Shown here: positions 17,286 through 22,451 of the stretch, piece by piece
How the letters are laid out: every line of letters begins with the position of its first letter
How positions within the stretch are numbered: position 1 is the first letter of the stretch
Virus record (IMG/VR): IMGVR_UViG_3300049043_000112
Location: 172,017 to 236,016 of that record
Strand: one strand, 5' to 3'
DNA length: 64,000 nucleotides
Position numbers and translations under genes: made by a program
Notes under the pieces: model-generated
What the model saw: only the letters and a program-made list of their open reading frames with translations
Told to the model about the DNA's origin: nothing
Database searches by the model: none

Positions 17286-17657
17286 TCAAGTACAATTATT
17301 CCTTCTAGGACGATAAGCAAATAGATTGGTTGGAGGGTCTGGTTTCATCCATTCTTCTATCTTATCAAATCGTTCTTCACTATAAAAATCTTGTTGAACG
17401 TACCATAACTTCCAGTGCTCGTGCCCCTTTGACTGGTTACAATCATGGCAGCAGCAGACTACGTTCTTTGTAAAGTCTGTTCCACCTTTTGCTTGAGGAA
17501 TAATATGGTCAATTGTAAGGTTCTCTTCTGACCCACAATAAGCACATTGATGTCCCCATTCTTCTTTTATATTTTGTCTCCACATTCGTTTCGCTTCTCC
17601 TGGACTTGTTGTTCGTAGATTGAACAAGTACTCTGAAGGCGAACGGAGGAGATCCAT
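17286..17657 (-). CDS. HNH endonuclease
   Basis: CAYCG...TIDHIIP..GG...N...C..CN motif. Confidence 0.9.
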   Translation of the reverse strand: MDLLRSPSEYLFNLRTTSPGEAKRMWRQNIKEEWGHQCAYCGSEENLTIDHIIPQAKGGTDFTKNVVCCCHDCNQSKGHEHWKLWYVQQDFYSEERFDKIEEWMKPDPPTNLFAYRPRRNNCT

Positions 17658-18737: not shown

Positions 18738-18776
18738 ATTATATATCTAAAAAAAGAAGGGGTCAAGCCCCTCCTT
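18738..18776 (-). promoter_or_regulatory. Terminator hairpin overlapping a sigma70-type promoter for petE
   Basis: TTGACC-17 nt-TATAAT, with the -35 inside a GC hairpin followed by a T-run. Confidence 0.7.
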
Positions 18777-18897
18777 GTGAATATACAGGTTGTAAGATTC
18801 CTCCATCTTGGTCATCATCGTCATCGTGATCTTCAGTGAAAATAACGATAAGTGCGAATGCGAAGATAACCAAGTATAGAAGATACTGTGCGGTCAT
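18763..18897 (-). CDS. Small membrane protein with acidic tail
   Basis: Manual translation MTAQYLLYLVIFAFALIVIFTEDHDDDDDQDGGILQPVYSQGGA. Confidence 0.55.
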   Translation of the reverse strand: MTAQYLLYLVIFAFALIVIFTEDHDDDDDQDGGILQPVYSQGGA

Positions 18898-18911
18898 AAT
18901 GGATTGCCTCT

Positions 18912-19478
18912 TTATGAATAAGATTTAAGATTTTCTACCAGTGTTTGGAGTTCTTGTAGGGATGCGTCACACTTTAACCAGTTTGCTCTTGATGATACTA
19001 CCCATATATTATCAGGAGTATATCCCTTTCCAGGTTCCTTTTGATCTAAACTTGGATTTCTTGCATCTCTTTTATTATTTGTAGATACAAGAGGTATTCC
19101 AAGCAAAGGACAAGTTTCTGGAATAACAATATCATCTATAGTTATAGTAAAAGGTATTCCCTTTCTTTTTGCTCTATGTTGAGCATTATGAAACATTTTA
19201 TATCTTCTATCGTCTTCTTTGCGAGTTCCTTTCGGTTTTCTTTTAGTTTTGTTAAAAGCAATAGTAGTTTCTTTTCTAACACATCCGCAACTTGTAGTTT
19301 TTCCAGATACAAGACCATATCTTTCACAAATTTTTTGACCTCCACACTCACATTTATTAGTTGTATACACTCTACTTTTACCACTTTTAAAAATAATTTC
19401 TTCTTTTAAGACAGTAAGTTTTCCAAATTTTTGCCCAACCAAAGCACCACAAGGTTTTGATTTACTATTTAATCCCAT
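18912..19478 (-). mobile_element. Free-standing homing endonuclease (His-Me-finger/HNH-like) downstream of psbD
   Basis: CECG/SCGC Zn motifs; SLD....GY..DN........N pattern; own late promoter TATAAATA at 19504..19511. Confidence 0.75.
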
Positions 19479-19540
19479 TACCCCAAGTTTGAATACCTAT
19501 TATTATTTATATTTTATCATACTTTGGGTCTTATGTAAAT

Positions 19541-19567
19541 AAAAAAGACCCCAATAATGAGGTCTTT
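19541..19567 (-). terminator. Intrinsic terminator after psbD
   Basis: AAAGACC-TCATTATTG-GGGTCTTTTTT. Confidence 0.75.
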
Positions 19568-19571
19568 ATAA

Positions 19572-20633
19572 TCAAAGAGCATTTCCACGAGGCAATACCT
19601 CTTCTGGAAAAACGAAATTTTCGTGTGGTTGATCTACTGTCGCCATCCACGCTCTTATGCCCTCATTAAGAAGAACATTTTTCGTTGTGAATGTTTCGTA
19701 TTCAGGATCTTCAGCGGCACGAATTTCTTGAGATACAAACTCATAAGCCCTCAAGTTCAAACCCAAACCAATAATGCCAATAGAACTAGTCCAGAGACCC
19801 ATAACGGGAACAAAAAGCATGAAAAAATGTAACCAACGCTTATTAGAAAAAGCAATTCCAAAAATCTGCGACCAGAAGCGGTTTGCAGTAACCATCGAAT
19901 AGGTTTCTTCTTCCTGAGTCGGTTCAAATGCTTTGAACGTATTTGCTTGATCACTGTCTTCAAATAGTGTGTTTTCTACAGTTGCTCCGTGAATCGCACA
20001 GAGCAGTGCTCCTCCCAGTATACCAGCAACTCCCATCATATGGAAGGGGTTGAGTGTCCAGTTGTGGAAACCCTGAAGAAACAGAAGGAACCTGAAGATA
20101 GCAGCAACACCAAACGATGGTGCGAAGAACCAACTGGACTGACCCAGTGGATACATCAGGAACACAGATACAAATACTGCAATAGGACCAGAGAATGCGA
20201 TTGCGTTATAGGGTCTGATACCTACAAGACGAGCAATCTCAAACTGACGAAGCATAAATCCAATCAGACTAAAGGCGCCGTGGAGCGCCACAAAAGTCCA
20301 GAGTCCCCCAAGTTGGAACCACCTGACGATATCCCCTTGAGCCTCAGGACCCCAGAGCAGAAGAAGAGAATGACCCATAGCGTCTGCTGGGGTACTCACC
20401 GCAGATGTTAAAAAATTACAACCTTCCAAATAACTGGAAGCAATACCGTGTGTATACCAACTTGTAACAAATGTCGTTCCAGTCAACCATCCACCAAGAG
20501 CAAGATAAGCAGTTGGAAAAAGCAGCAACCCACTCCATCCAACAAACACAAACCTATCCCTTTTCAACCAATCATCTAATAAATCAAACCAACCTTTTTG
20601 TTGATTTGGTAGTGAAAGTGTAGAAGAAGTCAT
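19572..20633 (-). CDS. psbD: Photosystem II D2 protein
   Basis: [14 protein letters not shown]...[10 protein letters not shown]; 353 aa, uninterrupted. Confidence 0.99.
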
Positions 20634-20696
20634 AACCTCCTATGTATTTCTCATATTTAGTTTACAATACTTTACAAAATAGGTCAATAGGGATTT

Positions 20697-21275
20697 CTAC
20701 TTATTGAACCTTTTATCAATAGGTTTATCTGGATCAAGTCCTTTTGCTTCTCTATATTTTCTCCATCTTTCTTTTGTTGCTTCACTTCTCCTCTTTCTTT
20801 CTTCCTTACTAACATTAGGATTTGAAGACCACCTTTTATTTCCTTCAAGTGATTTACTTATTTTTTTCTTTGTATCCTCACTTAACTTTTTACCAACCAT
20901 ATAAGTGTTACCTTCCAAACTTTTTGATATTTTTGCTTTATGTTCCTCACTTAACTTCATACCAGTTCTAAACTGTCTCAACTTCTCCTTACTCTCTTCT
21001 GTATGTTTTGATTTACCTTTATGAGATTGACTGATTTTCTGTTTGGTTTCTTCTGTATGAATTCTTCCAGTTGGGTCCATCAACAACTTTACAATCTCTT
21101 CTTTACCAATAGTTCCTTCTAAACCTTTCCAAGCACAGTAATCTTTGATATTACCATATTCCTCCCACAACTTTCTGTGTGCCTCTGCGTGTTCTTCCAC
21201 AGTCAGTTCAATAAGATTTGATGGGTCATCACTACCACCCATATGTCTTGGAATAATATGATGTTTATGTTTCAT
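20697..21275 (-). mobile_element. Free-standing HNH homing endonuclease with NUMOD3-like repeats between psbA and psbD
   Basis: HHIIPRHMGG.DD..N......EEH..AH plus HTEETKQKIS repeats; TATAAATA at 21302..21309. Confidence 0.9.
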
Positions 21276-21320
21276 TCTTACTGCTGCTGTGTCTACTACA
21301 TTATTTATACATTATAGCAT

Positions 21321-21371: not shown

Positions 21372-22451
21372 TCAACCGATGGCAGGAGCAGTGAGAGCAA
21401 CAGGAGTGCTTTCAGCGGCAGCAAGGTCCAACGGAAAGTTGTGGGCGTTACGTTCATGCATAACTTCCATCCCCAGTCCAGCACGGTTCAGGACATCAGC
21501 CCAGGTATTGATTACCTTGCCCTGACTATCAACAATAGACTGGTTGAAATTAAAACCATTGAGATTAAAAGCCATGGTGCTCACACCAAGAGCGGTGAAC
21601 CAAATACCGACAACGGGCCACGCCGCTAAAAAGAAGTGCAGCGAACGTGAGTTATTGAAGGAAGCGTATTGAAAAATAAGGCGTCCAAAGTAACCGTGTG
21701 CAGCAACAATGTTGTAGGTCTCTTCTTCTTGACCGAACTTGTAACCATAGTTCTGGGACTCGGACTCAGTGGTTTCACGAACCAGTGAGGAAGTAACCAG
21801 AGAACCGTGCATAGCACTGAACAGAGAACCACCGAAGACACCAGCAACTCCAAGCATGTGGAAGGGGTGCATCAGGATGTTGTGCTCTGCCTGGAACACA
21901 AGCATGTAGTTAAAAGTACCAGAGATACCCAGAGGCATCGCATCAGAGAAAGAACCTTGACCGAAAGGATAGACCAGGAACACTGCACTCGCAGCAGCAA
22001 CAGGTGCGCTATAAGCAACACAGATCCAAGGGCGCATACCCAGACGATAAGAGAGTTCCCACTCACGACCCATGTAGGCGTAGATACCAATCAGGAAGTG
22101 GAACACAACCAGTTGGAAAGGACCACCGTTGTATAGCCACTCATCTAGGGAAGCAGCTTCCCAGATGGGGTAAAAGTGCAGTCCAATAGCATTGGACGAA
22201 GGAATCACAGCACCAGAGATGATGTTGTTTCCGTACATGAGTGAACCAGCAACGGGTTCACGGATGCCATCGATGTCCACAGGAGGAGCAGCGATAAAGG
22301 CAACGATGAAGCAGATGGTAGCAGCAAGCAGGCAGGGAATCATCAGAACGCCGAACCAACCCACATAAAGGCGGTTATCGGTGCTGGTGACCCACTGGCA
22401 AAACTGTTCCCAAGTATTCGATTGTTTTTGACGTGAAAGTGTAGCAGTCAT
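21372..22451 (-). CDS. psbA: Photosystem II D1 protein
   Basis: Full-length 359-aa D1 ending [13 protein letters not shown] plus C-terminal extension; no intron. Confidence 0.99.

Follow-up and report, generated by a model that had tools for sequence, protein, structure and literature searches.

We analysed a 64,000-nucleotide (nt) stretch of viral DNA (positions 172,017 to 236,016 of IMG/VR record IMGVR_UViG_3300049043_000112; hereafter the window) and found that its psbD gene, which encodes the photosystem II (PSII) protein D2 (PsbD), probably lies between two free-standing homing-endonuclease cassettes, each bringing its own copy of the adjacent psbD end. Gene conversion driven by these nucleases appears to be rewriting PsbD residues that are otherwise nearly invariant. 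The window derives from a T4-like cyanomyovirus whose best nucleotide matches among sequenced phages reach only about 80-83% identity, and related sequence was found in metagenomes from lakes, freshwater and further aquatic sources. Read along the minus strand, the genes are psbA, the upstream nuclease gene (unuc), psbD, the downstream nuclease-like gene (dnuc), a small open reading frame (ORF) of 44 amino acids (aa) and petE. Both nuclease families are position-specific and sporadically distributed, and psbD and its surroundings show localised divergence, breakpoints, scars and empty sites. The features that carry the argument are the following.

20697..21275, minus strand: unuc, 192 aa, a free-standing, homing-endonuclease-like gene with an HNH and three NUMOD3 domains (Pfam, PHROG)
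19572..20633, minus strand: psbD, full ORF of 353 aa (Pfam Photo_RC, 246 bits)
20394..20633, minus strand: divergent, AT-recoded 5' segment of psbD, codons 1 to about 80 (from G+C content at third codon positions, GC3, and contig divergence)
19764..20393, minus strand: conserved core of psbD, codons about 81-290, common to many phage populations
19572..19763, minus strand: divergent 3' segment of psbD, codons 291-353 and the stop, with seven replacements
18912..19478, minus strand: dnuc, 188 aa, a free-standing nuclease-like gene (PHROG matches, AlphaFold model)
18894..18911, minus strand: scar of 18 nt, a displaced psbD end (R-G-N-P-L codons and stop) directly past the dnuc stop

The psbD gene of the window is a mosaic. 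Contigs from three other studies show high depth over the core only and depart from the window at 19763 and at 20390-20394, reading the canonical A-L-N-L-R-A past 19763 and the canonical ANFLTAAVST near codon 80. Because these contigs match the core and depart at both boundaries, we interpret the gene as a shared core with two foreign ends. In sliding windows of 90 nt, the core has partners of 92-99% identity among 80 loci; for the last 220 nt of the gene, the best partner in this set reaches only 76-83%. Compared with the nuclease-free locus L070, codons 250-290 are the same except for one synonymous change, and divergence sets in abruptly from codon 291. The 3' segment carries 6-10 mismatches per 45 nt to its closest nuclease-free allele, against a baseline of 2-3. 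Breakpoints at codons 291-309 were found in 13 of 21 dnuc-bearing alleles.

Codon usage follows the same division. GC3 over codons 1-70, 71-253 and 254-353 is 0.26, 0.42 and 0.32 in the window, as against 0.36, 0.40 and 0.38 in nuclease-free alleles. The AT shift of the 5' end is also seen in unuc-carrying alleles, where GC3 of the 5' segment is 0.27. An earlier examination of the letters and translations alone (the sequence-only reading) had pointed to AT-rich codons at both ends of the gene, and the codons in question (TTA/TTG/AGG/AGA/ATA/TTT) indeed make up 18.6%, 8.2% and 14.0% of the three stretches in the window versus 9.6%, 7.4% and 9.7% in nuclease-free alleles. The extents it gave needed revision: both ends are recoded, but the 3' tract comprises 63 codons (from 19763) instead of about 100, and the 5' tract ends near codon 80 (20390-20394). 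The mean GC3 over 80 loci has a profile similar to that of the window; a family-wide and hence uninformative codon pattern was rejected, since the ends of the window gene are still AT-shifted with respect to nuclease-free alleles.

Clumped G+C and intragenic recombination have been described for psbD of Synechococcus myoviruses, with endonucleases unmentioned (Sullivan et al. 2006, PMC1484495). The gene-level pattern is the same here, and the present data tie the end segments to the nuclease genes beside them. A literature search returned no paper tying psbD to a homing endonuclease.

The 3' segment changes seven residues of PsbD: A291G, D298E, F312Y, Y316T, I320V, L326I and P332T. Since the residue number in the window equals the Thermosynechococcus D2 number plus one, F312Y and Y316T correspond to D2-F311Y and D2-Y315T. 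The protein was set against 80 close viral sequences, 92-97% identical to it, and against 120 representatives of clusters that span cyanobacteria, algae and plants. The window residues that are rare among the viral sequences (A291G, D298E, F312Y, Y316T, L326I and P332T) all fall within codons 291-332. G291 occurs in 1/80 viral sequences and 0/120 representatives, E298 in 0/80 and 1/120, and Y312 in 1/80 and 5/120. T316 was found in neither set, which makes Y316T absent from all 200 PsbD sequences compared.

The unusual C-terminal motifs quoted in the sequence-only reading are present as quoted, starting at residues 289 and 309, and the Y-to-T codon is ACA at 19686-19688, which differs from both TAT and TAC at all three bases. 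That it was not a simple read error was borne out by a locus from another metagenome (L082), which has the same G291, E298, Y312, T316, V320, I326 and T332. The two alleles differ in codons 291-353 by about 20 synonymous and 2 non-synonymous codons; this sharing of an allele that varies mostly at synonymous codons indicates that the 3' allele is real and still constrained. The key lumenal residues E313 and K318 (E312 and K317 in Thermosynechococcus numbering) are kept, and D2-F311Y and D2-Y315T flank them. With the numbering checked, the changes do lie beside the chloride and proton site, as had been proposed: D2-E312 belongs to the E65/E312 proton gate and D2-K317 is a Cl-1 ligand (PMC10684718). 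Nothing concerning D2-F311 or D2-Y315 was found in the literature.

At the population level, divergence at each end of psbD follows the adjacent nuclease. We computed divergence and replacement statistics over 85 unique full-length psbD alleles, 21 with dnuc and 64 without. In alleles with dnuc only, mismatches to the nearest nuclease-free allele rise above the baseline in codons 271-353 alone (8.1 and 13.3 per 90 nt, baseline 4.4 and 6.6). In alleles with unuc only, the excess lies mainly in codons 1-90 (9.1, 12.9 and 12.1 versus 5.6, 3.3 and 2.9 per 90 nt), with a slight excess also at codons 271-353 (6.9 and 8.7, baseline 4.4 and 6.6). Where both nucleases are present, the excess is seen at codons 1-90 and 301-353. 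The excess divergence is thus confined to the adjacent 60-90 codons, and the breakpoints are clustered. The 3' end of psbA showed no excess divergence in loci carrying unuc; psbA, which is the target in the case of F-CphI (see below), was therefore rejected as the target of unuc.

Amino acid replacements follow the same sides. Codons 286-353 carry a mean of 4.6 replacements in dnuc-bearing alleles and 0.9 in the rest (p=1.5e-9), codons 91-285 do not differ between these two groups, and for codons 1-90 the mean is 11.3 in alleles with unuc and 4.7 in those lacking it (p=1e-4). As the alleles share ancestry, the p-values overstate independence. A Y or W stands in place of F312 in 9 of the 21 dnuc-linked alleles versus 0 of the 64 others (Fisher 7e-7), and these replacements are scattered over several clades of the dnuc tree. 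The suggested co-occurrence of F311Y with the downstream nuclease is thereby upheld, and neither the odd residues nor the recoding are common in psbD genes lacking nucleases: no nuclease-free allele is altered at 291, 298, 308-311, 314, 316 or 317. The consensus C-terminus is present in 37/73 dnuc-free loci versus 0/49 unique dnuc-linked ones. Replacements recur at sites 291, 308, 310, 311, 314, 316, 317, 320, 326 and 336-342, and the residues at recurrent sites vary across dnuc clades (Y/W at 312, T/V at 316, S/L at 317). The zones are clade-specific, with dnuc clade I peaking at codons 335-342 and the clade of the window at 303-322. Because the same few codons are hit repeatedly with varied residues across dnuc clades, this pattern suggests selection on a recognition site more than the inheritance of a single haplotype.

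The position of both nuclease families relative to psbD is fixed. Our surveys covered the best 80 of about 350 relatives per nuclease. Homologues of dnuc (41-100% identity) are located 20-170 nt directly 3' of psbD in 75/75 loci having upstream DNA, out of 80 returned when viral contigs were scanned with a dnuc alignment, and the same arrangement was found in the cultured isolate S-SKS1, 60 nt downstream of psbD. Close unuc homologues (at least 67% identity) lie directly 5' of psbD in 23/23 informative loci (L161-L184), informative loci being those that extend past the nuclease gene (23/24, with L163 ending about 20 codons into psbD). Relatives of unuc of at most 57% identity are located elsewhere and not before psbD. 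More distant dnuc relatives have other neighbours, for example DNA polymerase, and reside in unrelated phages, as is typical for a homing-endonuclease family spread to different targets. The presence of either nuclease is sporadic: among 80 psbD-anchored loci, dnuc and a relative of unuc were each found in 7. Elsewhere the same slots hold other genes, among them an F-CphI-like endonuclease VII in 22 loci (Pfam Endonuclease_7, 3.4e-22).

Three of the surveyed loci deserve separate mention. In S-SKS1 (L241, NC_020851.1, 4367-5422), RefSeq labels psbD as 'photosystem II D1', while its product is D2; the C-terminus of this PsbD is strongly aberrant, with P310G, E311S, F312Y and more (…EDGSYETF…REWMMTID…NFPVIEEIL…). 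The psbD gene beside the dnuc homologue of L133 (about 2033-2890) looks disrupted or rearranged, residues 1-73 matching at 74% and the match restarting at residue 117 with overlapping coordinates. Past the intact dnuc homologue of L130 (about 1597-2241), an unuc-like fragment (residues 70-168) and a second dnuc fragment (residues 144-184) look like piled-up nuclease debris.

The upstream gene has the hallmarks of a homing endonuclease. It scores 22.0 bits against Pfam HNH (cut-off 21.4) and 60 bits against NUMOD3 (three repeats), its HH...N...H motif is canonical, and it matches PHROG 655 'homing endonuclease' (1.8e-19). It is about 35% identical to proteins of T-even coliphages annotated as homing endonucleases. 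The downstream gene matches PHROG 3322 'endonuclease' (3.3e-31), PHROG 1035 'endonuclease VII' and PHROG 374 'HNH endonuclease', and is, judged from its sequence, a member of a widespread phage nuclease-like family for which Pfam has no model. Of the two flanking genes that the sequence-only reading called homing endonucleases, the upstream one carries HNH and NUMOD3 domains and the downstream one matches PHROG endonuclease families but no Pfam model. Neither gene matches PF02945, the Endonuclease VII / F-CphI family.

An AlphaFold model of dnuc, obtained with an alignment of 49 homologues, has a predicted local distance difference test score (pLDDT) of 86.5 and comprises two domains. The N-terminal domain is modelled as a small β-barrel with four invariant cysteines (Cys4), and the C-terminal domain as a β-β-α arrangement with strands at residues 142-146 and 158-162 and a helix at 163-171. 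The best fold matches of residues 84-188 are PacI (Z 6.7), Hpy99I (Z 5.2) and the Gme HNH nuclease (Z 4.7). A profile search of solved structures with dnuc returned only an insignificant zinc-ribbon match (Kti11/Dph3, E about 1), and Foldseek against the PDB gave no match at E ≤0.001, with PacI ranked second at E 0.13. Residues D145, Y153, N157 and N166 are invariant.

Displaced psbD ends remain beyond the nuclease genes. Past dnuc, canonical remnants of the 3' end of psbD were found in L033 and L113, where the last ten codons are fused in the dnuc reading frame, in L065/L158/L160 and L145/L175, where the last ten codons are followed by the terminator, and in L146 (codons 326-353). On the other side, canonical 5' remnants of psbD precede the unuc cassette in L175 (codons 1-46), L170-172 (codons 1-22) and L054 (codons 1-26). 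Mismatch counts for the intact psbD copies of L175 and L171 were left aside, since a length difference of one codon inflates them. In the window, 18911-18894 aligns to the last five codons and the stop of psbD in the nuclease-free loci L027, L070, L071 and L064, and the DNA downstream of this scar keeps matching nuclease-free loci. The corresponding empty site was seen in contigs of three other studies, which join 18896 directly to a canonical psbD end, which places the inserted or replaced block at 19763 to 18912. From the positions of the remnants, the cut sites would be bounded to about codons 291-326 for dnuc and 46-90 for unuc.

In L175, an ORF of 131 aa without a family match (2544-2939) is located between the psbD 5' remnant and unuc, a position from which it apparently travels within the unuc cassette.

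The simplest scheme that accommodates these features is one of intronless homing, in analogy to SegF, SegG and MobE of T4 and to cyanophage F-CphI. In a co-infection, the nuclease would cut the psbD end of a phage without the nuclease gene, and the break would be repaired from the nuclease-bearing genome. Repair would copy the nuclease gene together with the flanking psbD tract, which carries many synonymous and some non-synonymous differences and would presumably be left uncut. Where homology downstream is missing, the far junction would form illegitimately and leave a scar. The outcome would be a mosaic of a core, a 5' tract tied to the HNH-NUMOD3 gene and a 3' tract tied to the downstream HNH-like gene. 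F311Y, Y315T and the other changes in the 3' tract would persist by travelling with the nuclease and probably by guarding against it.

Related systems are known. F-CphI of phage S-PM2, a free-standing homing endonuclease in the psbA-psbD spacer, cuts a photosystem gene of element-free phages (Zeng, Bonocora and Shub 2009, as cited in PMC3037559). It is endonuclease-VII-like and targets the psbA intron insertion site, whereas unuc and dnuc belong to other families and the divergence tied to them lies in psbD, not in psbA. Homing endonuclease genes of ICP1 phages are described as marking the boundaries of exchange between similar genomes (PMC10448857); the phage group and the genes differ from those considered here. 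In T4, the free-standing nucleases SegF, SegG and MobE cleave, in a related phage, the gene next to their own, with co-conversion of flanking markers (PMC2988022, PMC2790892). As in the window, their genes are flanked by conserved ones and often have late or middle promoters. Intronless homing and localised marker exclusion in T4 are reportedly the subject of Belle et al. 2002. In the window, however, the target would be a photosynthesis gene of host origin, with one element on either side of it; the co-converted tracts include replacements of near-invariant residues, and displaced gene ends remain as scars. The mitochondrial endonuclease ORFs of the Allomyces atp6 type bring a replacement 3' gene end and leave the old end downstream. 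Those elements belong to fungal mitochondria, are of the GIY-YIG or LAGLIDADG type and are often fused in frame, while dnuc is a separate phage gene with its own putative promoter; an in-frame fusion to the remnant was seen here only in L033 and L113.

The sequence-only reading held that each flanking nuclease targets psbD and has driven an immune allele. The side specificity of each nuclease, the divergence at the adjacent end and the displaced psbD ends beyond agree with nuclease-driven recoding; that psbD is cleaved, and that the phage's own allele would resist cleavage, we infer. Beside the relatedness of the alleles and the depth of the surveys given above, several further points weigh against this explanation. 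The downstream gene has no match in Pfam or NCBIfam, and its fold matches to HNH nucleases are modest (Z 4.7-6.7). Its canonical catalytic His, expected at the end of the first strand, is missing, and the position after D145 is unconserved among the 49 homologues (Q in the window, R or K in relatives). The active site may be a variant one, and given the HNH-like fold matches the predicted nuclease activity is likely in spite of the missing His. The 5' amino acid haplotype of the window also occurs in L002, L003, L005 and L007, all without unuc, which makes the 5' case weaker for this genome. Since some cyanobacteria (5/120 representatives) have an F-to-Y change at 312 as well, only Y316T and the combination are truly exceptional. 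Finally, although the non-synonymous rate (dN, Nei-Gojobori) of the 3' tract is 3.5-fold higher among dnuc-linked alleles, with a similar synonymous rate (dS), dS is saturated (>1), so that the rise fits selection for resistance, relaxed constraint and an old foreign origin alike.

In the main rival explanation, the nucleases drive their own spread without any immunity being involved. The psbD ends would then be foreign DNA carried along from a distant phage lineage, with neutral or slightly harmful passenger changes that do not block cleavage, and the true target might be intergenic. The scars and breakpoints, which show the import of whole segments, are in line with this, as are a dN/dS ratio far below 1 and the existence of dnuc-bearing alleles with just one replacement (the L033 and L136 groups). 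Passengers would not readily explain why no dnuc-bearing allele retains the consensus C-terminus, which half of the dnuc-free loci (37/73) do, or why codons 291, 308-317, 326 and 336-342 are hit repeatedly by different residues in different dnuc clades. We regard this explanation as unlikely, if the strongest of those opposed to nuclease-driven recoding.

A second explanation takes the region to be a generically hypervariable part of cyanomyovirus genomes, in which recombination with diverse phages and hosts turns gene ends into mosaics, with the nucleases as frequent cargo and not the cause. The psbA-psbD spacer and the DNA past psbD do hold many unrelated genes, and patchy G+C and intragenic recombination in psbD are known (PMC1484495). 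Yet loci with other cargo in the same slots lack the extra divergence and the odd residues, the effect is side-specific for each nuclease, and the families keep their positions over 41-100% identity, which leaves general hypervariability improbable. Functional tuning of D2, with the C-terminal replacements selected for a changed PSII property in infected cells and a coincidental link to the nucleases, is more improbable still. The changes do flank the preserved E312 and K317, at the Cl-1 site and the proton gate (PMC10684718), and the allele is still under purifying selection; but they occur in none of the 64 nuclease-free alleles, differ between clades without a common direction, and are accompanied by dense synonymous recoding that has no effect on the protein. 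An assembly or sequencing artefact or a decaying pseudogene can be dismissed even though the window comes from a metagenome-assembled contig (L081, 236 kb), because the reading frame is uninterrupted over its full length, the second metagenome (L082) has the same allele with mostly synonymous differences, and an independent run, although possibly from the source sample, shows 0 differences over the junctions.

Nuclease-driven conversion of the psbD ends might extend to an ongoing arms race, in which dnuc clades shift their recognition site along the 3' end of psbD and force fresh escape changes, including non-synonymous ones at residues that oxygenic phototrophs conserve beside the proton gate of water oxidation; we put this forward tentatively, as a possibility that we would at present rather bet against. 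Were it true, nuclease drive and not photosynthetic function would mainly shape the diversity of cyanophage D2, a consequence we hold to be just as speculative, and variant D2 segments could feed back to hosts.

The psbA and psbD genes of cyanophages are among the most studied auxiliary metabolic genes, and their mosaic, patchy-G+C structure has been put down to recombination between hosts and phages and among phages, with no known driver. The psbD data point to one, namely two position-specific selfish nuclease cassettes, each overwriting one end of the gene. They would also provide a natural example of a selfish-element conflict pushing change into a segment that is near-invariant from cyanobacteria to plants, beside D2-E312 and D2-K317. 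The natural variants F311Y/W, Y315T/V, P309S and E310S (Thermosynechococcus numbering) are ready probes of the PSII channel. As S-SKS1, which grows on Synechococcus WH7803, carries the arrangement, the idea is testable.

The remaining features of the locus are listed below.

21372..22451, minus strand: psbA (D1), 359 aa, the upstream neighbour, its 3' end without recoding (Pfam Photo_RC, 302 bits)
21302..21309, minus strand: TATAAATA, a T4-type late-promoter motif 26 nt ahead of the unuc start
20659..20687, minus strand: putative sigma-70-like promoter ahead of psbD (TTGACC, 17 nt, TAAACT; consensus match only)
19544..19567, minus strand: predicted intrinsic terminator-like hairpin past psbD (sequence prediction)
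19504..19539, minus strand: putative dnuc promoter region, with a sigma-70-like site (19511-19539) and TATAAATA (19504-19511), 25 nt before the ATG
18763..18897, minus strand: small ORF of 44 aa, hydrophobic/acidic, directly 3' of psbD in nuclease-free relatives

The late-promoter motif TATAAATA has just 9 matches across the 64 kb of the window, two of them directly ahead of unuc and dnuc. It is also present ahead of the dnuc homologue in 7/7 related loci inspected and in S-SKS1. RNA read runs held at most 8% of the words of the window and gave no RNA evidence worth reporting. The 44-aa ORF (18763-18897) is hydrophobic in its N-terminal part and has an acidic tail, DHDDDDDQD. Its GTG start in nuclease-free relatives overlaps with the stop codon of psbD, which hints at translational coupling of the two genes.

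A third HNH gene of 123 aa (17286-17657, minus strand; Pfam HNH_5, 1e-14) lies 1.3 kb downstream of dnuc. Its homologues were found in 28/80 psbD loci at varying distances past psbD, and it may be another mobile nuclease of this region. The psbA gene is uninterrupted in the window; in L098, L110, L118, L119, L126-L129 and L147 it is split after codon 336/337 by an insertion of about 210-260 nt, to which L126-129 add a second one of about 220 nt near codon 298. These insertions presumably resemble the group I intron known from psbA of S-PM2. The psbA-psbD spacer of L034, L040, L056, L073 and L076 contains a family of ORFs of 192-203 aa, for which no convincing domain match was obtained (weak CapR, E 0.007). 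Two of these five loci, L034 and L040, also carry dnuc.

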